Assembly (NCBI RefSeq): GCF_001194135.2
Contig: NC_068994.1
Span: 22,727,887 to 22,791,886 of the forward strand
Direction: 5' to 3'
Length of the DNA stretch: 64,000 nucleotides
Source: Octopus bimaculoides
Taxonomy: Eukaryota
This document shows, in pieces, positions 10,081-63,914 of the stretch. The number at the start of each line of letters is the position of its first letter. Position 1 is the first letter of the stretch. The notes beneath the pieces were generated by a model. That model did not search any database. It was not told the origin of the DNA and worked only from the letters and a program-made list of their open reading frames with translations. A program made the translations under genes and the position numbers.

Positions 10081-11542
10081 GTATAGTGGGTGTTAGTATT
10101 TTGAAAATACCTCATGGAATGACAACTGTGCACTGCATAGTTACAGGCTGTCCTTTGGCAACACATAGCACCTGTTCAGCCACCCTGCTAGGGATATGGT
10201 GAATTCATGGAAACTGCAGCATGGCTGATTGTGAAGAGGTAGCAGAATAGCTAACTGAGCCAATGATGCTTCTTACATTGATGCTGAGTGGAGGAATCTT
10301 AGAAAATCAATGGTCAGAATCACCAAGCTGTATCGAGAGAGTAACTGTAACACATCCATGGGGGTTGCATCCATGTTTGTGTAATTCACTATAACTCAAG
10401 CTCTTAATTCATATTCATAATAGAGGAATTGGGTGGCAACATAGTCATGGAAATCTGCAAAAGCAGTGAAAAGAAAATATTGGGTGCAAAATGGGCAGTT
10501 TAGTGACATACTGAAAAGTAGCAGGAAAGTTTGTCAAATTTTTTTTATATCTCAATTACAGCAGACCAAAATGCATAGCTATCTGAAGTTGAGAGAAAAT
10601 GAGAACTTTCAGAGCACAAAAACTCCTTTTACTGTCAAGATGCTTTTTAGTTGATGTTTGTAATTTCTTCCATATGTTATATGGGTGTTTATATTTTTAT
10701 CTGTATGTGAACAGCGTAACTTCTTGGTAAATCATTTGGAGTTGTATGTTGTAAGTGGAGAAGTTTTATTATAAGAGCTGGCTTTAAAAAACCCGCAAGT
10801 GTACGTGTGTGCTCTTTGCTATAATCTAAAAATATGGTTTTGCCTCGAACCTTTTCAATCTCAAATATTTCTTTTTGTTATTTAGTTCTTTCCATTTCTT
10901 AGCTTCTAACTCTGGCCAATTGCTGTATGGGTAATGTAGTTTTTGAAGTGCTTGGAAAAAGCCCCTAGAGAATTGGTGTGCTGTCATCTTATTTGGAATT
11001 ATATATTTGCACCGTTATGTTAAAACCATTCTTGCTTTGTCATGGGCTGCATTTCTAAGATGTAAGGCTTGAATATGCAGTACCCATTTCAAATTCTTTA
11101 AAGAGTTTAGGGATATACACTTAGTGATTAAGTAGCTAATACTATGTTGACAATATAATCAATACAAGTTACAAAATCTAAGTAGAATAAGCTAGTTCTA
11201 ATAAATATATATTTATTCAAAAACGTTTTATTTTTTCTAAAATTATATTTGTAAATGTTAAAATAATTTCTAACTATAATTTTTCAGGTTTGTTATACAC
11301 TGAATAAGTAAACATTCCAAGTGATGTCTCAGCATGGCGTTTACAAACTTGAAAACAAGTTTAATTCAACTTTGTTGCTGAAGCTTCTTTCCTTCTCTAT
11401 GTCTGATCTTTGAAATAGAAGTTAAATTGGATGTTAAGCATCATACAAAGTCAATATTTTGCAGGTGGAATTAGTAAGACGACTTAAAAAGATTTAAACA
11501 TTTCTATGACTGTCTAATTCCAGTAGTCACAGTTTTGGCTTC

Positions 11543-13615
11543 ATGTGTTCCTCTGCTTATAAACAAAAAGACACAAAAAAAAATGGTGATGCTTGTTCAT
11601 TTTTAAACTCACACCCTTTTTATTTAAATGCTCCCAATTTCCCATTCAAAATGAATACACCACATCATCACCATCATCATCATTATAATATGCCACCTAA
11701 TCATCAAATGAATTTTGATATTTGTAATCACAGCAGTAACAACAACAGCAACAACAACAGCAACAACTGTACTGCTTCCACAAATAATTGTCGGAATAAT
11801 GCTAAAAAGCTTTTACCTCCTATTGATCATCATCAACATCTCAATCATTTAATGCCAAAAAATAACAATGGTCGACAGAAAACTTTCCAACAAAACAGGA
11901 AATCTTCTACTACACCTTTACCAATATTAACTACAACAGCAATAACTGCAGCAGCAGCAACAACAACAACAACTACAACAACAGCACCTTCAAATGTTAC
12001 TAGTAAGAAAACTGCTTTGACATCATCAGTAGCTACACCACTAGCAACACTTCCCATGGCAACTACAGCTCTAACAAATAAAAGTATTCTTCCTTTCTCT
12101 ATGCTGACTCCACCATCAGAGAAAGCCAAAGACAAACCATATAAGTGTGAGACGTGTCGCAAGGCGTTTTCCCGACAATCAAATCTATCTCACCATGAAG
12201 AAACTCCAGCAGAACGTAAACATTTCCATTGTACCTACTGCTGGAAAGCATTCCCTGTGCGTGCCCGTCTTCGTGACCATGAACGTTCTCATACAGGGGA
12301 GAAACCTCATAAATGCCCCGTCTGCCCCAAAGCGTTTAGTCATCAAACTAACTTGAAAAATCATCTGAGAGTTCACTCAGGGGAAAGACCATTTGTATGT
12401 GGAATGTGTGGTAAACGTTTTAGTCATCTAACCAATCTACGTAATCATGAGAGGACTCATACTGGATTAAAACCATATATCTGTGGTCACTGTGGAAAGG
12501 GTTTTGGCCACATGACTAATTTGAAAAACCATCGTCGAACGCACACTGGAGAAAAACCATTTGTTTGCACTCATTGTGGTAAGGCTTTCAGCCATCAGAC
12601 CAACTTGAAAAACCATCAGAAAACCCATGCATCTCTAGAAAATTATGTAATGCTTGTAGGTCAGTCCAGTGCCTCTAACACTGTAGAAGAGCTCGAAAGA
12701 CTTTCTGCAGCAGCTGCTGGTGCCTTGATGCAAGCTTCTGATAATTCTGAACGACTACAAGCTGATTCAAGAGTGTCAATGTCTGATTCAAGGGTGTCAA
12801 TGTCTGATTCAAGGGTGTCAATGTCTGATTCAAGGGCATCAATGTCTGATTCAAGGGCGTCAATGCCTGATTCAAGAGTGTCAATATCTGATTCAAGAGT
12901 GTCGATGCCTGATTCAAGAGTGTCGATGCCTGATTCAAGGGCACCAATGTCAGATTCAAGGGCATCGATGTCTGATTCAAGGATGTCAATGCCCGATTCA
13001 AGGGTGTCAATGTCTGATTCGAGGGCGTCGATGTCTGATTCCAGGATGTCAATTCCTGATTCAAGAGTGTCAATGTCTGATTCAAGGATGTCGATGTCTG
13101 ATTCAAGGATGCCATTGTCTGATTCAAATATGAAAGAACAACAAAAGGAGCAACCAAGAGATACCCAATTAACGTGGCAGCCACCATCTACTCTTTCTTC
13201 ATCTAACATTGCTTCCAATTCAGTTGCTGCACGTACAGTTGAAGAATTGCAACAGTTATCTTCATTATCTTCAGCAAGTGCTTCAGCTGCACGAACTGTT
13301 GAAGAATTGCAAAAGCTATCTTCACTATCCAATTCATCAACAATTACACCTTTATCTTCACCACCTGCCTCCAGTGTACACATGCCTACACTAGAACATA
13401 TGAAGCATTCTCAGTCTTCTAGACGTATGACAGAGACACCTCATAGGTTTACCCCATCAAATGTTTGCCAAGCAGCAGAAGACTTTAACAGAATGCCTCC
13501 ACAAACTTCAGCAGCGACTAATCGCATGGTTGAAGAACTTCACAGGTTATCTGCACAATCATCTATACTTAGAATGCAACCCTTAAACAAAATTAAGGAT
13601 TCTCGTCCAAACTAG
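11543..13615 (+). CDS. C2H2 zinc-finger transcription factor, gene 1 (690 aa; 1 atypical + 5 canonical fingers; His/Asn/Thr low-complexity N-terminus; heptad-repeat C-terminal region)
   Basis: Uninterrupted 690-codon ORF with fingers at 12140-12628 and TGEKP/SGERP linkers. Splice acceptors upstream (TTTTCAG|G 11281-11288, TTTTGCAG|G 11457-11465). An alternative start at 11651 has a better context (CAAAATG). AATAAA at 13633. Confidence 0.95.
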   Translation: MCSSAYKQKDTKKNGDACSFLNSHPFYLNAPNFPFKMNTPHHHHHHHYNMPPNHQMNFDICNHSSNNNSNNNSNNCTASTNNCRNNAKKLLPPIDHHQHLNHLMPKNNNGRQKTFQQNRKSSTTPLPILTTTAITAAAATTTTTTTTAPSNVTSKKTALTSSVATPLATLPMATTALTNKSILPFSMLTPPSEKAKDKPYKCETCRKAFSRQSNLSHHEETPAERKHFHCTYCWKAFPVRARLRDHERSHTGEKPHKCPVCPKAFSHQTNLKNHLRVHSGERPFVCGMCGKRFSHLTNLRNHERTHTGLKPYICGHCGKGFGHMTNLKNHRRTHTGEKPFVCTHCGKAFSHQTNLKNHQKTHASLENYVMLVGQSSASNTVEELERLSAAAAGALMQASDNSERLQADSRVSMSDSRVSMSDSRVSMSDSRASMSDSRASMPDSRVSISDSRVSMPDSRVSMPDSRAPMSDSRASMSDSRMSMPDSRVSMSDSRASMSDSRMSIPDSRVSMSDSRMSMSDSRMPLSDSNMKEQQKEQPRDTQLTWQPPSTLSSSNIASNSVAARTVEELQQLSSLSSASASAARTVEELQKLSSLSNSSTITPLSSPPASSVHMPTLEHMKHSQSSRRMTETPHRFTPSNVCQAAEDFNRMPPQTSAATNRMVEELHRLSAQSSILRMQPLNKIKDSRPN
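12761..13117 (+). repeat. Coding minisatellite, 17 x 21 bp, encoding (A/S/P)DSR(V/A/M)(S/P)(M/I/L)
   Basis: Units such as TCTGATTCAAGGGTGTCAATG counted directly; 357 bp. Confidence 0.97.
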
Positions 13616-36656: not shown

Positions 36657-37395
36657 GTATAACCAACTTAATGCTAGCAGTAATACAACATGTAGAACTA
36701 GGACTAGGAAGGTTTTGTGATTTAAGCCAGCTTTCAATATGGCCGTAAAAACAAATATGGGTAGGGAATTCTTAAAATTAGTCTCTAGACATTTTCAATC
36801 TAGCCATAAGTTTTATAGAATATTTAATAGAAGAACGTTTAAGATCAGCTATTCTTGCTGCAAAAACTTTGCCTCTTTTATTAACCAACACAACAATAAG
36901 ATAATTGCAAATAACCAGAGTGCTGATTCTTTTCCTAAAAATTTCAATTGCAAAGATGGGACCTCTTGTCCGTTGGATGGAAAATGTCTGGAGAAAGGAA
37001 TCGTGTATAGAGCCAAAGTGCAGATAGAAGGCTCACACAAATATAGAACTTACACAGGGGCTTCTGAAAATTCTTTCAAAACCCAATTTTATTCTCATAG
37101 AAATTCCTTCCGATACCCTGAAAATAGGACAAAGACCAGCCTGGCAAAATATGTCTGGGAATTAAAAGAAAACGAAATCCAACATTTGAACGTGACAGGG
37201 AGAATTTTAGATAGAGCATCACCTTACAGACATGGTGCGCATAAAAAACCCATCAAATGTGATTTATGTCTGTTGGAGAAATTCTATATTTTATTCCAGG
37301 ACAATAGTGCTTTTAATCAAAGACACAAACTCTTGAATTCCTGCAGACATGCACCAAAATTCAAAATGTCAGCTAACAATATACCATATGGATAG
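36657..37395 (+). mobile_element. Penelope-like element (Neptune-type) C-terminus with GIY-YIG endonuclease, 5'-truncated
   Basis: CPLDGKCLEKGIVYRAKV..YTGASENSFK..HRNSF..TSLAKYVWELK..CDLCLLEKFYIL..NQRHKLLNSCRH. The upstream frame reads RKVL*FKPAF (conserved W of W-F-N-P-P changed to TGA at 36718), so it is a pseudo-ORF. Confidence 0.92.
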
Positions 37396-41011: not shown

Positions 41012-41612
41012 TATGAGGTGATGAAGCACGACCGTCGAACATTAGGCCTCACCGAGGCAATGACTAGTGACCGAGACCTTTGGAAATATGCTGTGCTTGA
41101 GAAGACCCAGCAAGCCAAGTGAGACCATAACCCGTGGACTATGCCAGTGGTGTAACCAGCCCACTTAGGTGTACCTTTCTTTCATTGGGCACTAAACTCG
41201 GTTTGCAAAGACCTGTTGAGGCAAGTGAAATTGAAATCAAATTCAATGACAGCACCACATGACTGGCATCCGTGCTAGTGGAGCACTAAGAGCACCATCC
41301 AAGCATGATCATTGCCAGGGCCGCTGACTGGCCCCTGTGCCAGTGGTATGTAAAAAGCACAATTTGAGCATGATCGTTACCAGCGTCGCTTTAGGTGACA
41401 CATAAAAACACCAGTTGAGCGTGGCCGTTGCCAGTGGCATGTAAAAGCACCCACTACACTCTCGGAGTAGTTGGCATTAGGAAGGGCATCCAGCTGTAGA
41501 AATTCTGCCAAATTAGGCTGGAGCCTGGTGTTGCCATCCGGTTTCACCAGTCCTCAGTCAAATCGTCCAACCCATGCTAGCATGGAAAGCGGACGTTAAA
41601 CGATGATGATGA
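41012..41612 (+). mobile_element. RTE LINE 3' end (ORF2 terminus, 3' UTR, (GAT)n tail)
   Basis: EVMKHDRRTLGLTEAMTSDRDLWKYAVLEKT, then the shared tail ending GGACGTTAAACGATGATGATGAT; tail repeated at 42054-42252 across the gap. Confidence 0.88.
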
Positions 41613-42374
41613 TAGGTAGATANNNNNNNNNNNNNNNNNNNNNNNNNNNNNNNNNNNNNNNNNNNNNNNNNNNNNNNNNNNNNNNNNNNNNNNNNNNNNN
41701 NNNNNNNNNNNNNNNNNNNNNNNNNNNNNNNNNNNNNNNNNNNNNNNNNNNNNNNNNNNNNNNNNNNNNNNNNNNNNNNNNNNNNNNNNNNNNNNNNNNN
41801 NNNNNNNNNNNNNNNNNNNNNNNNNNNNNNNNNNNNNNNNNNNNNNNNNNNNNNNNNNNNNNNNNNNNNNNNNNNNNNNNNNNNNNNNNNNNNNNNNNNN
41901 NNNNNNNNNNNNNNNNNNNNNNNNNNNNNNNNNNNNNNNNNNNNNNNNNNNNNNNNNNNNNNNNNNNNNNNNNNNNNNNNNNNNNNNNNNNNNNNNNNNN
42001 NNNNNNNNNNNNNNNNNNNNNNNNNNNNNNNNNNNNNNNNNNNNNNNNNNNNNGCGTGGCCGTTTTCGTGCGGGTGACACGTAAAAGCACCCACTACACT
42101 CTCTGAGTGGTTGGCATTAGGAAGGGCATCCAGCTGTAGAAATTCTGCCAAATTAGGCTGGAGCCTGGTGTTGCCATCCGGTTTCACCAGTCCTCAGTCA
42201 AATCGTCCAACCCATGCTAGCATGGAAAGCGGACGTTAAACGATGATGATGATAGGTAGATAGATAGATAGATAGGTCTAAAAGAGTGTAGAAAGTTAGA
42301 AATACCAGTGGAGAAGTTTGTGGGTGATGAGAGGAGACAGGATCAACTGGCGCAACCAGTTGAGTGTGTGATAT

Positions 42375-51370: not shown

Positions 51371-52040
51371 ATGTATTCTTCTAAATCTTTGTACAATCCT
51401 ACAATTCTGGACAATAGCAGCCAACATCTTGATAAATCCTTGTATAATGCTTCGATATTAGATGACAACTGTCGAAGACTTGACCATGATATTATACAGA
51501 AAAGCCACCTGGAACAGTCCAGTATGAAAATGGGTGTTATCCCAAGAAGTGAGGATTCTCATAATGATCACCTAAAGTCCTATAACAGTCACTATAGCAG
51601 TAATAGCAACAATAGCCTCAAAATGAAAATAATAACGTCAGGCTCTTCTGGGTTTCCATACATTGCTGAGAATAATATGAACAGGAACAGTGATATTATT
51701 ACTAATTCTGAAAACATCACCACCAACAACGCCAATACCAAAAACAAGATAGGGCTTATTCCTAATTCTCCTTACATTGGTATCAGCCTTAGTATGAAGA
51801 AACCATATAAATGTGGAACCTGTCGTAAAGGTTTTGCTCAACGCGGCCACTTGATAAACCATGAATTAGGTGGCCGGAAGCATTTTTTCTGTACGTTCTG
51901 TAACAAAGCCTTCTCACAGGAGATTATACTGCGTAATCATGTAAGAACACATACTGGTGAGCGGCCATTTCACTGTAGTTACTGTACTAGAACCTTTTGC
52001 CAGGTGACTGAATGGAGAAATCACGAAAGAACTCATACAG
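51371..52040 (+). CDS. C2H2 zinc-finger gene 2, first coding exon (atypical ZF1, ZF2, ZF3)
   Basis: ORF with PYKCGTCRKGF..HELGGRKHF FCTFC.. FHCSYC..HERTHT. Acceptor TTTTCATAG|G at 51034/51035; donor ACAG|GTAAG at 52040/52041 (phase 1). Confidence 0.92.
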
Positions 52041-52329
52041 GTAAGATACAGTATGATTTCTTTTCTTTACATTATATTTTCACATGAGTATACCATCTTC
52101 TTTTTTTACTAGATTATTATGCTTAATCATAGTGAGATCAATTCACTACTTTTGAGTAACTGAAATTCAAGGTATAGTATAATGCATCATATCAGTAGCA
52201 GAACCCCAAATAATCTCTTAAATAAATAAATGTGTAAAGAAACGAAAAACATTAAAAAAAAAAGGATTTCAGTAATAATTTCAATAATTATCCAGTTTAT
52301 ATCATACGGATGCAGACAGTTGCATACAG

Positions 52330-52812
52330 AAGTGCTGATCACTTAAAGTGGATGGAACATGTGTAAAAAGGGAGACCCAAGAAGACATGGGACAAAATAT
52401 TGAAGGATGATCTCAAGACACTGAGCCTTGCAAAGGAGAAGACTAAAGACCGAGATATTTGGTACCTTGTTGTACTCAACAAGACTCATCTGTCACAGTA
52501 GAATTGATACCAGTGCTGGTACCACACAAAAACACTCATGCTGGTGTCACATTAAAAGCATTGGTGCTGGTGCCACATTAAAAGCATTGGTGCTGGTGCC
52601 ACAGAAAAAGCACCCAGTGCACTCTGTGGATTGGTTGGTGTTAGGAAGGGCATCAAGCCATAGAAAGTTGGTGTTAGGAAGGGCATCAAGCCATAGAAAC
52701 CATGCCAGAACAGACAATAGAGCCTGGGGTGGCCCTTGGCCTTACCAGCTCAGGTCAAAACCATCCAACTTGTGCCAGCATGGAAAATGGACGTTAAATG
52801 ATGATGATGAAA
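52330..52812 (+). mobile_element. RTE LINE 3' end in intron of gene 2
   Basis: KRETQEDMG..LKDDLKTLSL..KTKDRDIWYLVVL remnant, tandem GGTGCCACA..AAAAGCA units, internal duplication TTGGTGTTAGGAAGGGCATCAAGCCATAGAAA, (GAT)n tail. Confidence 0.85.
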
Positions 52813-54081
52813 ATTAAAGTATACATCTTACTAAGTAAATATAGCTCTGTAGTTGTTATGAATATTTACACTTGGTGTTTTACTCATATTCTTCATTGAT
52901 TACCTTCACCTAAAGTTACATTCACAGTATTGTATATCAGTGCCAAATTTATGTAATTTATATTTGTATTGAAGTAAATTAATTCAGTTTACATTCAATA
53001 CCAAAATGAAAATGATAAATATTATGATGACAATGAATTCCAAAGCTTTATTTATACATACAAAACTGAAGTAGAAATTTGATATGACATTAAGTTACAA
53101 TTAAATGGGAATTCTTAAACATTTCAAACACAAAGCTTTGTAAAAATCCTGTAAAATCATAATTTTCATCACCTTACCTTCATAATGATCAGGGTGAATG
53201 ATATCATTTATGAATCCTCTTCATCACTTTCAGTAATAATTGGTTGTATGTCAACTGCTACATCTTCATCATCATCATCATACGATATTCATCTTCTGTA
53301 CTATCCAGTGCATTTAAATTTCCACATTTCTACAATGACTTGATAATAATGTCAACATGTATTATTTTTTGTTAAGTAACAATCCATTTCCATTAAAGAG
53401 ACAATGATGTAGACAGCATACTATCATCTTTCTCCATCATTTATTCTCATTATCATGCTAATCTAATGGTTGCAAAACATTTGTGAATCCTTCAGGATTT
53501 TCTGCTGTGTCAGTCAGTGTTTGTGATTTATACACTATCAAACTGAAAGTCTTCACTAGATGTAACCTTAAGTAATCTCAAACAGGCAAGCACTTTTCTT
53601 TCTGAAACCCTCTAAGATGTAAATTTCAAATTTCCTTCATTTACTGCTTCTATCCCCTTTCATCTATTCAGCCATGTGACTGCATATTTACAATAATTCC
53701 TTCCAGAAATTTCTCCTTTGGTGTAGTATTTCTCTTAAAAACAACAATCTGTATTAATTTAGTAGAGCATGCCTTACATGAAGGAACTAAAACAAAACTT
53801 ATGTCCAGTAATTTTCACCAGTACTAATTTCTCTCCTGTTTGGTTCAAGTGTTTAATCTGTTTCCAATGCATGATAACCTAAAATCTTTTATTGATTTCT
53901 GATTATAAATCAGAGAAGTTTTACTATCTTATCTTTTTGACCATCAGGCAAATTTCATGTAATCTTCATTCTTTACCAAAGAGCTAAATGATACAATTTT
54001 GTACACAATCTTAGCCTTTGTCTTAGAATATAAATTCTATCCATTTTTAGTTCCTTTTGCACATAGGTTCACATAGCTTCT

Positions 54082-55480
54082 TCATCATCATCGTTTAACG
54101 TCCGCTTTCCATGCTAGCATGGGTTGGACGATTTGACTGAGGACAGGTGAACCGGATCGAGCAGGGCCATCTACCTGAGGAGGTTTGTGTTTTGTCTACC
54201 TTCCTACTTATTAGGACTTTGGTTTTAGCTAGGTTGACTCTAAGGCCCTTTGATTCTAGTCCTTGCTTCCACACCTGAAACTTCTCTAGTTCTGATAGTG
54301 ACTCAGCAATTAGGGCAAGGTCATCAGCATAGAGGAGCTCCCAGGGGCATCCCATCTTGAATTTCTGTGTTATTGCCTGGAGGACTATGATAAATAGGAG
54401 GGGGCTGAGGACTGAACCTTGGTGGACCCCTACCTCTACCCAGAATTCTTCACTGTACTCATTGCCAACCCTCACCTTACTGACAGTGTCCCTTTACATG
54501 GCTTGCACAGCTCTCACTAACCATTCATCTATCCCTAGTTTCCTCATTGACTACCAGATAAGGGAGCAGGAGACCCTGTCAAAGGCTTTCTCCATGTCAA
54601 CGAAAGCCAGGTACAGAGGTTTATCTTTGGCTAGGTATTTCTCCTGCAGCTGTCTTACCAGAAATATAGCATCAGTGGTGTTTTTCCCTGGAACGAACCC
54701 AAACTGCATCTCATCTAAGCTGACTCTCTCCCTAATTAGTTGGGCTATGAACCTCTCCGTGACCTTCATTACCTGGTCCAACAACTTGATTCCTCTGTAA
54801 TTGTTTGTGTCTAAAGCATCACCTTTACCTTTATAGCAGTTGACTATGGTGCTGCTACACCAATCATTGGGTATGACTCCTTCCTGTATCACCTGGTTAA
54901 CAATACGGATGACTAGGCTATAGCAGACACGGCCAGATATTTTGAGCATCTCAACAGTGATTCCTGATGGGCCGGGGGATTTCCCTGTCTTCATACTCTT
55001 AATTGCTTTATCTACCATGGTACTGTCAATTAGGATAGCTGGTCCCTCTGTTGGGTCGACATGCAGCAGACTCTCTTCCTCCCATTCATTCTCTTTATTA
55101 AGTGACCTTTCATAGTGGCGTCTCCAAACTTCTCTCTTTGCAGCCTTGTTTAGTGCAAGTGAGCCATCAACCATGCGGACACATTTCTCTCCTACGACCT
55201 CACCACTCTCTCTCGCACACTGTCTTGCAACACGAAATACTTCAAGTCTTTGGTCCTCACAGCGCAGAACATTGGCAAATTTTTTCTTATCTGCTTCCCT
55301 TCTGGCTAAATAAACCTATCTGCTAGCTTCCCTTCTGGCAGTCTGATACAATTCCCTGCTACCTCCGTTCTTCCAGTCCTTCCAAGCCTGTTTCTTTTGT
55401 CTAATAGCCCTGTCAACCACATTGTTCCACCACCACATTTTTCATCTTGATGATTTTCAAGTATTCGTTCATTAACTTTA
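54082..55480 (-). mobile_element. Young RTE LINE fragment (RT domain) joined directly to the 3' tail
   Basis: KSPGPSG, NYRGIKLLDQVMKV, QFGFVPG, FVDMEKAFDRV, GVHQGSVLSPLLF, LLYADDL; one or two frameshifts; tail with (GAT)n at 54082. Confidence 0.95.
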
Positions 55481-55598
55481 TCCTTCAATTGTAGCTACCT
55501 GCAAGATTCTCTGACACATCAAATCCTCTTACTACACATAGTTATTTGTCTTGGTCAATTTGATAACTACTGCTTCTTCATTTATATATATATATTAT

Positions 55599-56648
55599 AT
55601 CATCATCATCGTTTAACGTCCGCTTTCCATGCTAGCATGGGTTGGACGATTTGACTGAGGACTGGTGAAACCGGATGGCAACACCAGGCTCCAGTCTGAT
55701 TTGGCAGAGTTTCTACAGCTGGATGCCCTTCCTAACGCCAACCACTCAGAGAGTGTAGTGGGTGCTTTTACGTGTCACCCGCACGAAAACGGCCACGCTC
55801 GAAATGGTGTCTTTTATGTGCCNNNNNNNNNNNNNNNNNNNNNNNNNNNNNNNNNNNNNNNNNNNNNNNNNNNNNNNNNNNNNNNNNNNNNNNNNNNNNN
55901 NNNNNNNNNNNNNNNNNNNNNNNNNNNNNNNNNNNNNNNNNNNNNNNNNNNNNNNNNNNNNNNNNNNNNNNNNNNNNNNNNNNNNNNNNNNNNNNNNNNN
56001 NNNNNNNNNNNNNNNNNNNNNNNNNNNNNNNNNNNNNNNNNNNNNNNNNNNNNNNNNNNNNNNNNNNNNNNNNNNNNNNNNNNNNNNNNNNNNNNNNNNN
56101 NNNNNNNNNNNNNNNNNNNNNNNNNNNNNNNNNNNNNNNNNNNNNNNNNNNNNNNNNNNNNNNNNNNNNNNNNNNNNNNNNNNNNNNNNNNNNNNNNNNN
56201 NNNNNNNNNNNNNNNNNNNNNNNNNNNNNNNNNNNNNNNNNNNNNNNNNNNNNNNNNNNNNNNNNNNNNNNNNNNNNNNNNNNNNNNNNNNNNNNNNNNN
56301 NNNNNNNNNNNNNNNNNNNNNNNNNNNNNNNNNNNNNNNNNNNNNNNNNNNNNNNNNNNNNNNNNNNNNNNNNNNNNNNNNNNNNNNNNNNNNNNNNNNN
56401 NNNNNNNNNNNNNNNGTTCGTACGCATGCGTCATACAGTCTGCCTTTTACTCTGAGTGAGAGTCCCTTTGTCGCCAGCAGGGGTAAGAGCTCTCTAAACT
56501 TTGCCCAGGCTATTCTTATTCTAGCAGCTACACTTTCAGCGCACCCACCCCCACTACTAACTTGGTCGCCCAGATAGCGGAAGCTATCGACTACCTCTAG
56601 TTTTTCACCCTGGAATGAGATAGAAGTTGTTTCCTGTTTGTTTGCAGT

Positions 56649-56650
<2 letters not shown>
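55599..56650 (-). mobile_element. Young 5'-truncated RTE LINE 3' end spanning the N gap
   Basis: 56417-56650 encodes the post-RT region (FRYLGD..RIRIAWAKFRELLPLL..KGLSLRVKGRLYDACVR); 55599-55822 is the shared tail; CpGs are retained. Confidence 0.85.
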
Positions 56651-56684
<34 letters not shown>

Positions 56685-56729
56685 GGAAGTATTTCTTCTG
56701 ATCCCACTGCTGAAGAGGATTGACCTGCA

Positions 56730-56925
56730 AGAGTCTGTGTCAGTACCACATTAGAAGCACCTAACATACACTGTAAAGTGGTTGGTGTTCGGAAGGGCAT
56801 CCAGCTGTAGAAACAAAGCCAAATCAGACTGCAACCTGGTGCAGCTCCCCAGCTGGCCAGCTCTGGTCAAACCATCCAACCCATGCCAGCATGGAAAACA
56901 GATGTTAAATGATGATGATGATACT
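56730..56925 (+). mobile_element. RTE tail copy, opposite orientation to 55599-55822
   Basis: GTGGTTGGTGTTCGGAAGGGCATCCAGCTGTAGAAAC..CCATGCCAGCATGGAAAACAGATGTTAAATGATGATGATGAT. Confidence 0.85.
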
Positions 56926-59149
56926 GGGAAGTATTTTCTCATAAAACCACATCAATTATCCTCCTATCAAGTGAGATCGCAACATGACTTTTATGCAGTC
57001 TTCTTGACCACTATAGCTGATAGAAATAGTGAACAGTTGTACTGATATTTGTAGTATCATTGTGTTAAGAGTTTCCACCTTTGGGGTTTTTTTTTTTTTG
57101 TCTTACCAACACTGGTCACATTGCTTCATAGCTGTGTTTACATCTACATACTAGAGGTTGATGGTGTGTTATGTACTGATAAGTACTACCCATTCAGAGA
57201 TATGATAGTTACAGTGAATAATAATGCTAAACGTATTTGGTCTAGTTTGTATCACTAATTATATTACAGCAATTGCAGTTCTTCAGTAATGAAGTAGTAA
57301 AATGTGTAGCATAATATTTCAGTGCTTAATAACTGGAAAAAAATACACTTTCTGACCATAACATTACAAGGGATAATTCTATGATCAGCATATATTGATC
57401 TGTTATCTATGTAAAAGTAGAGTTGACTTTTACATGATATTGACTTTTATTTGAATGTCTATGGAATTTATCCTTTATTTCAGTGATTCTCTGAGATTGC
57501 ATCAATTAAGAAGTTAAAGAGAGATGTATTATGTTAACCCAGTCATTGCTATAAGTTATAGTTTTATTGACCACATATTCTTATAATTCTACACCATTCT
57601 ATTGTATGCTTTTAATCATAAATTCTGTTCTCTCTACTAGTGAGTACATGATAAATATATGCAGCCATTTCAACCAGAATGGTGGAAGAAGGCATTATTA
57701 GCATTCTTGGTAGCCAGGATAGCTGATAGACTAATGGGTTTCAAACTAATTTTACATAATGTCATAGCATTAATGATCTCTACTTTTTATCAAAAGTAGG
57801 ATTAACAGATGTGCAAAAGCAACTTCGTTAGTATAGTTAACTATTTCCATGAACATGTCTAGAAACAAATGAAAGTATGGCCAAAATACAAAATATATAA
57901 AACAACTACCTAAATAATTGGTTACCCACCAGTCTGATAGGTGTAGGAATGAAATAGATTTTTTGCTTACCATTTAATGAGTCACCATTTATAAACAACG
58001 GTTCCCTTCACAATGTGGAATGTACTTCTTAACATGAATTAGTGAATTTAAGTTATTTCACTTCAAGTGAAACTTCCAAACAGTGCTGCATCTGTTTTGT
58101 CTGTTTTGGCACGGCTTCCACAACTGGATGCGCTTCCTAATGCCATCTGTTACTATCACTAGTAAGGTCATATTGCAACTTGCAAGTCTAAAGGATCTCA
58201 TGAAGGAGAGCAGAAGAGAAAGTGAGTGTGGTGATTTTAGGGAAGGTAATGAGAGATGGTAAAGGATGAGAGAAATAGTTTTATGGTTGTGAGAGGTTGA
58301 TAGTGGAGAAACTTTTTCTTGCCCATTATTATATTTATGGCAAAATCGTCCTTCTTTTATAAAGTTTGCCCTCCTTTTACTTTTGTCTATATTTTATGTA
58401 GTGATAAGTCTTGAATTGGAACAAACAAAAGTAAATAGTCAGGAGTTTTGAGTCATGAAGCTGATTAATTGAACTCCAATCTCTTCTAAAAATTTGAAAG
58501 TGAAATATTAAAAAAAGTTTTCCCTCCTCCTTATTCTCTCACTAGAAATCATCATTTTCAATACTGCACTCTGGCATTGTTAATATATTTAGAAATTAAG
58601 ACATTCAGTACAAAGACTGCCACATGTTATACTTCGTATATTTGTTGCATTCAAAAGTCATTGAAATTCAGATTGACACTTACTAAACAAAGTTAAAATA
58701 ATTTTACATAATATAAAAGAAGAGTAGAATGTTGAAGAAATGAGGAAAAAATGGATTTGGCAAAAATATCTACAAAGTTCACATCTAAAATATGTCAAAT
58801 GGTGAATAGCAGGTGTTAACCTTGTGAATTGACTTTTTATCATTATTGCAATAATGATTTTTATGTCAGAGTTGGTAAATTTTGTATATACATTCAGAAA
58901 AAGCAGTAAGTATGTCAGGGATAGTTGCAGAAGTTTTAAGAGCATCAGACTGTGTTGGTATTATGCTAGTTACTCACTTGAGCCTTTTGATGTTATTTCT
59001 AACTGAAATGCATCTCTCTATATTTTAATTAAATTCTAAAATAATAATGAATTTAAACTTGTTTTGTAAAACCATTACCTTTTATTTATTATTTATTCTA
59101 TAAATTTTGTATGGAATCTAATTGTTTCTCAGCCTCTCAAATTAGAGCT

Positions 59150-59360
59150 ATGTATATTTTCTTTCACTTGTTTTACTTGTTTCTCAGCTGTGGCCATGCT
59201 GGGACACCTCTTTGAATTTTTAGTTGAATGAATCAGCCCCAGTATTTCATTTTTAAGCCGGTCACTTATTTTATCAATCTCGGGGATGCAAATACACCAA
59301 CACCAGTTGTCAAGTGGTGGGTGGGCTGGGATACAAACATAGACACAAAGACACACACAC
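59150..59360 (-). mobile_element. 3' half of CORE-type SINE
   Basis: TTTACTTGTTTCTCAGCTGTGGCCATGCTGGGACAC..ACACCAACACCAGTTGTCAAG. Confidence 0.75.
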
Positions 59361-59589
59361 AAGGGGCTTAATATTCTACGATGACAGGTGGTATTGAGTA
59401 TGTTTGTGACAGAATGGTTAACTATCGTTAGTTACATAACCATTCTAGAGTGGGCTTAATGTAGCTGACAAGAGAGAACTTGGGCTTGGAGTTTGGGTTT
59501 CATATGTGGAATAACATGCCTCGGAGGATAGCTTTAGTCAACCATCTAGTTGTTTCTTGGACAGGGATGAAACTCAAATACTGCCAGTT

Positions 59590-60040
59590 ATACAATTAGT
59601 AGTACTCTGAATTGTTAACTAACTTGAGGTAGCATAGTATGGGCTTTGCATAGTATTTGTATGCATGGTAGATAAGGTTGTGTTTGGATGACCTAATAGG
59701 TGTAGAGATGATGATGGTTTGGTAGAAATGGGATGTGGAGGTGAGAAAGAGATCAAGAGTGTATCTGTGTTGGTCAGGAACATGAGTAAAAGATGACATT
59801 AGTTGATATAAAAAGTTGAAGATTGTGAAAGATTCAGTTTCTGCACTGGTGACATTTGTGTAGGTTGATTGTGAGATCCAAATGTAAACATTGAAGTCAC
59901 TAGTGGAAGGTGAAGTGTGATGATGTCCTTTATACAAGAAAATATGTGGTTGAAAAGTTGTAGGTGGTCAGGGGAGTTCATAGAACTGTAAGGGAGTTGG
60001 ATAGGGAAATTTTGAGTCTGAGTACATGGCAGTTTTTTTT
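59590..60040 (-). mobile_element. CR1/Jockey-group LINE endonuclease remnant
   Basis: SDFNV..HVPDQHRYTLDLFLTS..PIRSSKHNLI (AP-endonuclease GDFN / LDL / SDH motifs). Confidence 0.75.
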
Positions 60041-60471
60041 TTTTAGTTTTTTTTTTATGTTGAAATCTAAATGAAAGGGGGAAATGATGAAGAGAGTGGA
60101 ATATATATATTCTCAGACACCATCTTTTGGGTGAAATTTGAATACAGAGTGTACTGAATAGCAGAGATGAACTATGGATAATGGTTGAGAGGATTTGTGT
60201 CTTTGAGAGCAGTAGAATGCATATTAGTAAGAGTTTAGACTGGATTAAAGTCCATAAATGTTTATGAAGCATAGGGATAATTGTTTAGCAGGTTTAGATT
60301 TAGTTTTAGTATCTAATGAAACAGAAGATCATGATGGCATTGGTGCTAGTGACAACAACAATATTGATGATGATGAAATATTAGGTTTGGTACACTATGA
60401 CAGATATTTAAATGTTAAAATTTAAATCTTATGAGCAACATATCCATATATTCTACTAAATTGTATGCTTT

Positions 60472-61026
60472 ATTTAGAACAAGGGTGGGGAAACTTTTTA
60501 GTGTGGTGGTCAAAAATTTCCAAAAATGAAAAAAGGGTCCATGGGCAGATCACAAGTTCTAACTCTTATATCTGTATAAATCTTGTATATATCTATATAT
60601 AATTCGATATGCATTAATAAAGATAAGCTTAATACATTAAATTAACACATAACATCTTCATTAATGCCACCACTAAATTTAGGACATTTATATTATTCAT
60701 GAGGTATTCTATATTTTTCAGCTAGAGTGTAGTTGGGTCTCAGTGGGGTGGTACAAACCTAGCAATATGTATTTTGTAGTGAAAACAAAATTTCCATTGA
60801 AATGGCAATTGCTGGATGATTTTCTGTTTGAGTCTAACCATTTTAAGCTGTAGTAGAAATGCGACCTGTGTCACAAAGAGGCATATGAGTATTGTATAAA
60901 TTTTATAATTGAAAAATTGACTATATTTTGCATTTATGAGTTTACCAGCCTGTAGGCACAATAAAATGGGCTCGCAGGCGCAATTGCACTCACGAGTGGG
61001 GGTTTTCCCCCACCCTTGATTTAGAA
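60472..61026. mobile_element. hAT-superfamily MITE (539 bp, 60480-61018) with perfect 8-bp TSD
   Basis: ATTTAGAA|CAAGGGTGGGGAAAC ... GTTTTCCCCCACCCTTG|ATTTAGAA. Confidence 0.9.
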
Positions 61027-61489
61027 GGTCAATTATTGCTCTATTCATTTAAATTTTATATGTAAAAGATGTTAAAAACTTACACATACACACTCACATG
61101 CACAAATCAAAGGCTTTCCTCTCAATAATATCATAATTCTGTGAGTAGAAGAGGGGGAGATGAAAGGCTATAGAACAGATGCATCAGATAGAATAGATAG
61201 AGGAAGAGGGGTGAAGATATGGAAAAGGCAATAGTCAGTGGAGAGGGAGGATGCATGCACTATACAATAGACCAGCAGGTTGCAAATACTATCCTCTTAT
61301 CTTAATGAGTATTTGCCAAGTTTGTGCAGTAAACAGGGTCTTCTGCAACTACATATTGCCAGTTAGTATAATCCTTTGTCTTTCTACATAATATAGTCCT
61401 TTGTCTAACTATATATCACTAGTTAGTGTAGTCTTAACATCTTAAGATCATTTCTTACCAACTCATCCCAAGTCTTTCTTGGTCTTCTT

Positions 61490-61960
61490 CATTTACAAGT
61501 ACCATTTATTGTGAATGCTTGTCACTTGCTTATGCAGCTGTCATCCACCATCAGTATCATATGCCCATACCATTGCAGTCTCCTCTCTTGCATGCTAAAT
61601 CTGATTCCCCTTATACCCAATTTATTTCTCAGTTCATACTTTGTCGCTCATGTACACTTGCAAGGCACATCCAGCAAAGCAAGCTCTTCTTATTTCTTTC
61701 TAGCCTTCATTTCCCTTCGGCAATGAAGGATCATATCATGCTGCCATGCAACAGCACACTTCACATACAAGTTTCATATAATCTTTCCATGACCTTGAGG
61801 GAAAAATCCTTTGTTGCCAGCAGAGGTAACAGCTTCCTGAACATTGCCCAACCTGTTCTTATTCTGGTTACCACACGTTTGGAACACCCCCTTCATTGCT
61901 AATTTGGTCGCTTAAGTAAAAGTTATCTTCTACTTTTTGGGAGCTATCTGAGTATTTCAG
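61490..61960 (-). mobile_element. RTE LINE post-RT remnant
   Basis: Aligns by eye with 56417-56650 and 29900-30250. Confidence 0.8.
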
Positions 61961-62029
61961 AAAATCATTTCATGAATGTAATAAGCACTAAGATGATGCT
62001 TATAACCCCAATGTACCTGTTGCACTACC

Positions 62030-62600
62030 CATAATCTGACCATATAGTAAAAGAATCACTTTCAAGAAAATTGTCAATTTTAAAAGCTTTGTAATAAGAG
62101 ATATAAATCTGAACGGTGAAGGTAGTCGAGAATATGCTTCTGCTGTTGAAAATGATCAGCTGAAGATTTAGAAGAAAATCTACAACAAACTGTTTGAATG
62201 GTGGGAGGTGACATTTTAATAATTTTAAATCATCCAAAGCAAGTCAATGAAAAAGAGAGAAGTTTGACAAAAGGCTTCCACATAAATTCAATGAAAACCA
62301 AAGAATTGTCATTTTGAAGTGTATTCTTTACTGCTTTTGCATAACAAAAATGATCCATTTCTTGACCTGACTGTGACCTCTGAAGAAAGCTGGTTAATTT
62401 CTGACTATCAGAAATAATCTGTCCTTGTTAAATTGTGAGGTTTCAAGAAAATTCTTAAAGTATCTTAATCTGATCATGGTCCTTGTAAAAACTGTGTGGA
62501 ACTGGTATGATCTTTTCACCAGAAGAATATTACACCAGAGATTTACTTCCAAATATTGAAGAGGGTGGCTCATAAAATAGCATGATATTAATTAAACCAA
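62030..62600 (+). mobile_element. Old mariner transposase remnant
   Basis: HNKNDPFLDLTVTSEESW resembles the mariner first-Asp motif (N..FLD.IVT.DE.W). Confidence 0.6.
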
Positions 62601-63042
62601 TAATTAAGTTAATGAAAAAGCGAATCATTTTTTTTTTTTTTTTTTTCTCCCATTACACTTCTACCCATATTTTGCATGAAGGATATTACAGAAACTTAGC
62701 AGTTGAGGTTATGAAATTTGCTTTTATCGTTGTTCTGCCAAAGAATTGTCACCTACTGATTATTGTCTTAAAAAATCAACACATTTTAAAAGTAACAAAA
62801 TGCCTTCAAAGATTTTTTAAAGTTTGAGATCTCTGAGTTATTTTTTTTTATGTAGTTAATAATTTTTCTTGTTCGCAAATTTTTTTATTGGTCATGTTGC
62901 TTATGTATCAATTTATTAATTCAAATTTTCAAATGAGTCATTAATTTCTGTAAAGACTTGTAATTTGAATGTTATTTTTATGTTATTTTTATGTGTATAA
63001 GATCTTTTTCTAACAGTTAATTTTTTTTGTTTTTTAATTTAG

Positions 63043-63914
63043 GTGAGAGACCTTTCAAGTGTGCTCTGTGTCCCAAAGCATTTTCTCAGCAAGGCAATAT
63101 GAAAATCCATATGCGAACCCATTCTGGTATAAAACCATACAAATGTGATACTTGTGGAAAGTGTTTTTCCCAAAAGAATAATTTGCGCAATCATATTCGC
63201 ACCCACACTGGGGAAAAGCCACATAGGTGTGCAGTTTGTCAGAAATCCTTTGCTCAGGTGACGAATCTCAACAATCATGAACGGACACACACTCTAGAGG
63301 AGTTACAGAGGGTTTTCATCCAGCAACCTCCTGCTCACGCTCAGCCCATGAACTCACATCAGAACTTGTCTATGACGTCTTCTATTCCATCATCACCATC
63401 ATCTTCTTCATCATCATCTCCTGTTGCAGCGGTTAGCAATGCAGTAACAGGTTGTATGTCATTACCTTCATCATCTTCTGGAATCTCCTCTTCAGTGCCA
63501 ACTACTGTCCGGCCACAGGTGTTGAAAATCCCCACCACGTGGATGATGTCCATGGCAAACTCTACACCATCATCTTCTTTGTCTTTATCATCAGTTTCCT
63601 CAGCCATATCACCATCTTTGACAAATGTCTCATCATATGCACATCACCCACCACATACACATAGCCATCCTTACCAAACATCAACAAGTGCACATTTGCC
63701 TCCTTTGCCAACCATTCCCATGCCACCCAGCTGGCAAAATGGTTATGCTACGTGTTCACCTACAATGATCCCAAATCCGTCTTCAAGGTGGGGCTCTTCT
63801 GTAATGATGGCCAATCAGTCGGCATTTCCAGGAATGTTACTTCTTGATGATGTTAGAACTGATATTCAAGACTCCCCTGAAAATTTAACACAAAGATGGC
63901 AAGTTAATTCATAG
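63043..63914 (+). CDS. C2H2 zinc-finger gene 2, last coding exon (ZF4-ZF6 + Ser/Pro-rich tail)
   Basis: Polypyrimidine tract and TTTAG|GT acceptor at 63042/63043. Joining to 52040 gives ACA G|GT GAG AGA CCT = TGERP in frame. Total CDS 1542 nt = 513 aa. Confidence 0.93.

Follow-up and report, generated by a model that had tools for sequence, protein, structure and literature searches.

The Thr-Gly repeat of the Drosophila period gene is a coding repeat that was born by slippage in a disordered region of a transcriptional regulator, and its variable length is thought to tune function. Human PER3 carries in its exon 18 a coding VNTR that has a unit of 18 aa (54 bp), is present in 4 or 5 copies and contains putative phosphorylation clusters (PMC5537342). 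Tandem, Ser-rich and disordered heptads (YSPTSPS) form the CTD of Pol II at the C-terminus of its largest subunit, RPB1, their Ser-Pro dipeptides being CDK sites, and RS domains as well as RD/RE tracts are low-complexity, Arg/Ser-containing, disordered sequences, the charge of which is set by phosphorylation. In the RS domains of SR proteins, Arg-Ser dipeptides follow one another in runs, next to an RRM. Reflectin motifs are rich in Met, Arg and aromatics, and contain neither Lys nor aliphatic residues (PMC11927725).

In coleoid cephalopods, the families of C2H2 zinc-finger genes are hugely expanded (PMC9795677). Here we describe an array of 17 tandem heptads with an invariant D-S-R core, encoded within a C2H2 gene (gene 1) of Octopus bimaculoides; it lies in a window of 64,000 nucleotides, by which we mean the whole stretch of DNA that was analysed. 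To our knowledge, little is known about the regions outside the fingers in the expanded cephalopod C2H2 proteins.

The array is composed of 21-bp units that are arranged head to tail, have a length divisible by 3, are in frame with the coding sequence on both sides and decay at the edge, and is best read as belonging to a well-known kind, the coding minisatellite. It thus has in common with the PER3 VNTR that both are coding minisatellites of a regulatory protein; the latter, however, has documented polymorphism and phenotype associations, whereas the octopus array is known from one assembly, and the two sequences are unrelated. The period repeat differs from it in the dipeptide unit, in the unrelated sequence and host, and in that its role is backed by population and genetic data. 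The likeness to the Pol II CTD that had been pointed out in the initial annotation holds as far as the Ser-rich period of 7 residues, the tandem and, in the array, predicted disordered character of the heptads and the probably transcription-related host are concerned. It does not extend to the heptads themselves, which contain no Tyr, no Thr and 0 Ser-Pro dipeptides, are present in 17 fairly diverged copies and belong to a protein with C2H2 fingers as its only domains, and CTD-type heptads were rejected on these grounds. RS domains and RD/RE tracts resemble the array in being low-complexity, disordered and Arg/Ser-containing, phosphorylation being putative in the case of the array. Its 17 SR dipeptides are, however, isolated, one per heptad, with each Arg balanced by an Asp, and since they do not form runs and the Pfam scan revealed no RRM, an RS domain was rejected too. 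The same applies to a reflectin-like motif, because the array, despite its contents of 15% Met and 14% Arg, has no aromatic residues and consists to ~14% of Val, Ala, Ile and Leu taken together.

Results

Gene 1 occupies positions 11543..13615 of the forward strand and encodes 690 aa plus a stop codon in a single uninterrupted exon. It was identified from the ORF list as part of a stop-free frame of 701 codons (11510-13612), which has an ATG at 11543 and spans the fingers, the array and the tail. By exact look-up, the 690-aa product was matched only on chromosome record CM046614.1 of GCA_001194135.2, the chromosome-scale Octopus bimaculoides genome (PMC10700109). Its DNA-binding domain (12140..12628, forward strand; residues ~200-362) comprises one degenerate and five canonical C2H2 fingers and was recognized by Pfam (zf-C2H2, 4.9e-29; zf-H2C2_2, 3.8e-34; no non-finger family), by regular expression and by PDB matches to ZNF568 (the best, 5e-85), PRDM9 and CTCF. 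The fingers are of the Krüppel type, with tandem C-x2-C-x12-H-x3-H modules and TGEKP-like linkers; the Cys and His ligands are intact in 5/5 canonical fingers, and four fingers share a nearly identical recognition helix, xHxTNL[K/R]NH. The host had been taken for a transcription factor at the outset, and as a C2H2 zinc-finger protein it is indeed likely to be one.

The N-terminal third of the protein is of low complexity; it contains a run of seven histidines (His7) along with one Asn/Ser and one Thr/Ala tract, and two of these three are reported by Tandem Repeats Finder (TRF) as short tandem repeats (11730-11767 and 11928-11986). TRF also reported an 84-bp DNA repeat within the finger region (12461-12617), and with the two tandem tracts and this repeat gene 1 is prone to slippage.

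Outside the fingers we noted a motif, VEELxxLS, that occurs once upstream and three times downstream of the array, all four copies being on the forward strand and in one frame. The upstream copy, VEELERLSA (12683..12709; aa 381), falls into a helix that AF2 predicts for residues 381-408 with pLDDT 65-70, and helices were likewise predicted for VEELQQLSS (13238..13264; aa 566; helix 566-576), VEELQKLSS (13298..13324; aa 586; helix 586-592) and VEELHRLSA (13529..13555; aa 663; helix 657-673). That this motif recurs in one frame before and after the array, and that 165 codons remain open past it, indicates that the array, if it is part of the mRNA, is read in the frame given here, and from the ORF we infer that it is translated.

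The array itself extends over 12761..13117 of the forward strand (aa 407-525 of gene 1) and consists, in the reading frame of the ORF around it, of 17 gap-free heptads of the form [S/P/A]DSR[V/A/M][S/P][M/I/L], just as had originally been described. The 357 bp would give rise to ~119 aa, with the proviso that, owing to N gaps in the source assembly, the copy number and the order of the units could be mis-assembled. TRF delimits the repeat as 12762-13127, with a period of 21, 17.4 copies, 85% matches and 0% indels, and thereby reaches into a decayed 18th unit, SDSNMKE (13118..13138, forward strand), which borders the array on its 3' side. The first unit, ADSRVSM, starts with Ala, and all others start with Ser or Pro, as in SDSRVSM, SDSRASM, PDSRVSM and SDSRMSM. 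Identity of the sequence to itself is 0.845 at a lag of 21 and 0.26 at lags of 7 and 14, so that the period is irreducible; for this reason, and because none of the unit variants could be encoded by a 7-bp repeat, an origin of the array from a 7-bp microsatellite was rejected. With up to 2 mismatches allowed, an 18-base core of the unit finds 15 matches in the window, all of them within the array, as against 0.04 expected. A 63-bp higher-order duplication, in which units 10-12 would correspond to units 13-15, had also been proposed, and this proposal we had to reject. The two blocks differ at 7 of 63 bases and rank 8th among 78 block pairs, an adjacent pair of at least equal similarity is obtained in 57% of shuffles of the unit order (P=0.57), and the identity at a lag of 63 (0.84) is not above that at a lag of 21.

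By heptad position, the 17 units contain S11/P5/A1 at position 1, D17, S17 and R17 at positions 2, 3 and 4, V8/A5/M4 at position 5, S15/P2 at position 6 and M14/I2/L1 at position 7. D-S-R is therefore invariant in 17/17 units, as had been noticed from the beginning, in spite of variation at two third codon positions within the triplet: the serine at position 3 is encoded by TCA (x15), TCG (x1) and TCC (x1), and the arginine by AGG (x12) and AGA (x5). Relative to the consensus unit (TCT GAT TCA AGG GTG TCA ATG) there are 15 distinct types of variant, 7 synonymous and 8 nonsynonymous, and all the replacements are conservative (S/P/A, V/A/M and M/I/L), none of them altering the charge. These counts were compared with a neutral model in which 15 random non-stop single-base changes were drawn under a transition bias of 1 to 6. 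In this model, 8 or fewer nonsynonymous changes out of 15 have a probability of ~0.04, and the probability that none of the 8 falls into the D-S-R codons is ~0.003-0.008, or roughly 0.02-0.05 after a sevenfold correction for the post hoc choice of the triplet, all with the reservation that the units of one array are non-independent lineages linked by conversion and duplication. D-S-R thus appears to be kept preferentially, with a modest signature of purifying selection. We regard the mild constraint on the array's D/R pair as a signal that is real but modest, since it comes from one genome, from linked units and from a triplet that was picked after inspection; selection on the pair would be the explanation that suggests itself from the codons.

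A natural point of comparison is provided by a second C2H2 gene of the window, gene 2, which is encoded on the forward strand in two exons. Exon 1 (51371..52040; donor GT at 52041-52042) encodes a degenerate first finger plus two further fingers, and exon 2 (63043..63914; acceptor AG at 63041-63042, phase 1 within a TGERP linker) encodes three fingers and a Ser-rich tail. The two genes have in common a layout of six fingers that includes the odd first one, and their fingers are 47-60% identical. In agreement with what had been claimed, the Ser-rich tail of gene 2 carries no heptad array; since the two genes are old paralogs, however, the absence of the array from gene 2 tells little about its age.

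Our searches for relatives of gene 1 beyond the window were guided by its separate parts. A homology search with the whole protein was uninformative, as it returned only generic vertebrate poly-zinc-finger proteins, and a word-index search with the C-terminal 328 residues returned 0 matches. When the low-complexity tracts, the array and also fingers 3-6 were masked, the query returned one match, to a fish protein, which was confined to a finger. In a phmmer search of aa 363-690 against 1.84 billion representatives, 1041 proteins were retrieved at E<=1e-3; the best 150 of these, all of them unrelated heptad repeats, matched the array portion only, and none of the 150 combined fingers with VEEL flanks. 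Among the matches listed there were heptads such as ILDSRFS, PTPDSRL, IPDTRYQ, TTSDSRA, SSSDSRY and MPDSTVT, and MSDPGVA heptads of a HERC4-like protein from Saccoglossus. Ten matches that were traced to their source came from unrelated organisms or from ENA and JGI/IMG contigs, and several (ILDSRFS, PTPDSRL, KIQDSRF) proved to be 7-bp microsatellites translated in all three frames. Two of the top matches, P0126 (TTSDSRA in ~30 copies) and P0183 (SSSDSRY in ~16 copies), share with the octopus array the period and the D-S-R core but differ from gene 1 in having neither its flanks nor its fingers nor the VEEL motifs. The resemblance of these other D-S-R arrays to the octopus one is convergence and not homology. 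No relative turned up when metagenomes were scanned with the tail that follows the array. The exact look-up in a collection of 15 billion proteins found no record of the 690-aa product, and a look-up of its fragment from Met530 to the stop found no record either. Given that the product of gene 1 is itself missing from this collection, the lack of orthologs is weak evidence.

The missing product would also be expected if the array lay outside any working protein, with gene 1 being an unexpressed or recently dead member of the expanded octopus ZNF family, the array being spliced out or the number and order of its units being an artefact of assembly, in which case its regularity would have no biological meaning; all of these taken together we hold to be improbable. 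Such an explanation is further favoured by the failure of the searches to give an annotated relative of the non-finger parts, by the AG|GT-like strings that occur in every unit as potential cryptic in-frame splice sites, by the draft-derived nature of the assembly, with its many N gaps in the window, and by the massive expansion of C2H2 genes in octopods (PMC9795677), among which some dead copies are to be expected. However, an open frame of 701 codons in DNA of 33-39% GC would be very unlikely to persist without selection, and all five canonical fingers have retained their ligands. The 17 units differ at ~17% of their sites and yet contain no indels or stops, and the synonymous excess among the variant types points to a frame that is translated and constrained. 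An artefact is also argued against by the distinct variants in individual units, which make correct assembly easier.

With 17 Asp, 17 Arg and a net charge of 0, the array is exactly charge-balanced, and this balance as well as the Met content (15%) bear out the initial annotation. Charged residues account for a fraction of 0.286, and with a net charge of 0 per residue and a charge-patterning parameter kappa of ~0.06 the array is a well-mixed polyampholyte. AF2, run on the single sequence, modeled the array as a featureless coil with a pLDDT of ~31 and the VEEL motifs as helical; this agrees with intrinsic disorder of the array, for which low confidence in a single-sequence model is, however, weak evidence. 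A coiled coil, which would be helical and free of Pro and have its hydrophobic residues at positions a and d (3-4 spacing), was rejected: in the array, positions 5 and 7 are the hydrophobic ones (spacing 2 and 5), 7 prolines are distributed over 6 units, and the model is coil.

Candidate phosphorylation sites of two types, R-x-S (basophilic kinases) and S-x-x-D (CK2-type), had been reported for most of the units and many of their junctions, respectively. We count 15 of each; both motifs, however, name one and the same serine, that at position 6, and the array consequently offers 15 candidate sites and not 30. The serine at position 3, the most conserved one, matches neither motif. Full occupancy of the 15 sites by phosphate would, by calculation, bring the net charge of the array to about -30.

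These motifs invite the view that the array is a dedicated module for multi-site phosphorylation placed beside the zinc fingers, that is, a phospho-rheostat. Basophilic and/or CK2-type kinases would then act on the position-6 serine, and perhaps on the position-3 serine, of many units and would convert the neutral chain into a polyanion, by which DNA binding, recruitment of cofactors by the VEEL helices or formation of condensates might be graded, with the copy number setting the dynamic range. This would fit with the density of the motifs, namely 15 R-x-S and 15 S-x-x-D in 119 residues versus 5 and 1, respectively, in the other 571 residues of the gene 1 product, with the invariance of D-S-R amid synonymous variation and with the perfect charge balance, as a result of which any phosphate shifts the net charge. 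The array is also predicted to be disordered and could as such be accessible to kinases, and the PER3 VNTR with its putative phosphorylation clusters may serve as a partial precedent (PMC5537342). Nevertheless, we consider a phospho-rheostat unlikely. Kinase motifs of three residues are non-specific, and their 15-fold occurrence is an automatic consequence of the repetition of one unit. Moreover, both motifs converge on a single serine, and the conserved position-3 serine fits neither of them. Finally, the array was found in no ortholog, paralog or database relative, the best 150 phmmer matches included, and gene 2 functions without it.

Discussion

We propose, with a probability of roughly 0.6, that the array represents a coding minisatellite which is in frame, is translated as a disordered linker and is under mild constraint on its D/R pair. 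According to this model, slippage during replication, or else unequal exchange, would have multiplied a 21-bp unit within the large coding exon that gene 1 consists of, and translation of the copies would yield a disordered chain of ~119 residues that is rich in Ser, punctuated by prolines and exactly charge-balanced. Such a chain could serve as a flexible and soluble linker connecting the fingers and the first VEEL helix to the three VEEL helices downstream. Selection would be directed mainly at the reading frame and at the Asp/Arg pair with its intervening serine, thereby keeping the chain neutral, mixed and expanded, while the remaining positions of the heptad would be free to drift among conservative alternatives. 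Although the role as a linker is one that we infer, a disordered linker born by slippage accounts for every observation described above and is our default reading. The 15% Met is not obviously explained by a purely structural role of the linker. That the position-6 serine might be phosphorylated in many units is plausible on chemical grounds, as an addition to the model that the data do not require.

It is also conceivable that the array goes further and is a selected, lineage-specific effector module, which slippage built de novo and which acts as a switch operated by phosphorylation or Met oxidation. In this case, a neutral Asp/Arg polyampholyte would present one kinase-addressable serine per heptad together with periodic, oxidation-sensitive methionines, and graded phosphorylation or Met oxidation would turn an expanded neutral linker into a polyanion that either autoinhibits the adjacent fingers or drives condensation, with the number of repeats acting as an evolvable gain control. 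We regard this scenario as very unlikely.

As a disordered linker that originated by slippage, the array would make this locus a clean case of a DNA-binding protein gaining a long disordered segment through slippage, one that modification might tune, with a codon pattern hinting that selection already acts on the charge pair. If the array turned out to be both conserved and phosphorylated, the de novo birth of a regulatory domain could be studied in it as a tractable example; otherwise, it would be one more coding minisatellite, mainly of use as a polymorphic marker.

Rfam and tRNA scans of the whole window found nothing. The window is poor in GC (~0.21-0.43 in 2-kb bins), contains many TA/AT microsatellites and is interrupted by N gaps. 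On the strand opposite to gene 1, two ORFs of 240 and 170 aa, which are devoid of domains, run across the array, as a consequence of the repeat being stop-free.

Repeated elements of gene 1 and its relation to gene 2

In four of the six fingers of gene 1, the single-exon C2H2 zinc-finger gene that carries the heptad array, the recognition helix is near-identical (S/G-H-Q/L/M-T-N-L-K/R-N-H). Fingers 3 to 6 occupy positions 12290-12628 on the plus strand, and fingers 5 and 6 form an 84-bp DNA repeat with 77% identity (12461-12617; Tandem Repeats Finder). Taken together, the near-identity of these helices and the 84-bp repeat suggest that finger duplication in gene 1 was recent and that its protein would read a reiterated triplet; a candidate target is possibly A-rich simple-sequence DNA. 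The finger arrays of gene 1 and gene 2 both open with a degenerate finger of one kind, whose second His has shifted position (gene 1: HHEETPAERKH, 12140-12230; gene 2: NHELGGRKH, ~51800-51890), and this shared trait marks the two genes as paralogs within a single subfamily.

The tail of gene 1 holds four in-frame copies of the motif (T/M)VEEL-x-(R/Q/K)-LS, all on the plus strand, at 12683-12709 (aa 381), 13238-13264 (aa 566), 13298-13324 (aa 586) and 13529-13555 (aa 663), with the heptad array placed between the first copy and the other three. A structure model predicts a helix at all four, and the motif looks like a reiterated helical interaction motif. In gene 2, TLEELQRV immediately follows the last finger (~63300).

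Three additional slippage-type tracts lie in the N-terminal region of gene 1, namely His7 (11663-11683), a 12-bp repeat encoding Asn/Ser (11730-11767) and a 15-bp repeat encoding Thr/Ala (11928-11986). Among the listed matches to the array, many predicted database proteins with D-S-R heptads (for example P0121, P0127, P0130 and P0222) correspond exactly to three-frame read-through of 7-bp microsatellites: the heptads ILDSRFS, PTPDSRL and KIQDSRF follow from ATTCTCG, CCGACTC and AAGATTC. Public-database heptad proteins of this type may simply represent microsatellite read-through.

Known and possible mobile-element remnants

An open frame of 224 codons rich in Cys, Lys and Asn (36721-37392, plus strand), for which no Pfam match was found, may be a mobile element remnant. 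The segments 41561-42193 (minus) and 55659-56456 (plus) are two copies from a single repeat family in inverted orientation, each adjoined by an N gap and each translating to GLVKPDGNTRLQ...HPHENGHA; they probably belong to the same transposable element family. Within the gene 2 intron (52041-63042), two adjoining minus-strand ORF fragments at 54098-55315 match reverse transcriptase (RVT_1, 8e-10 and 2e-12); this is a broken retroelement copy beside an assembly gap.
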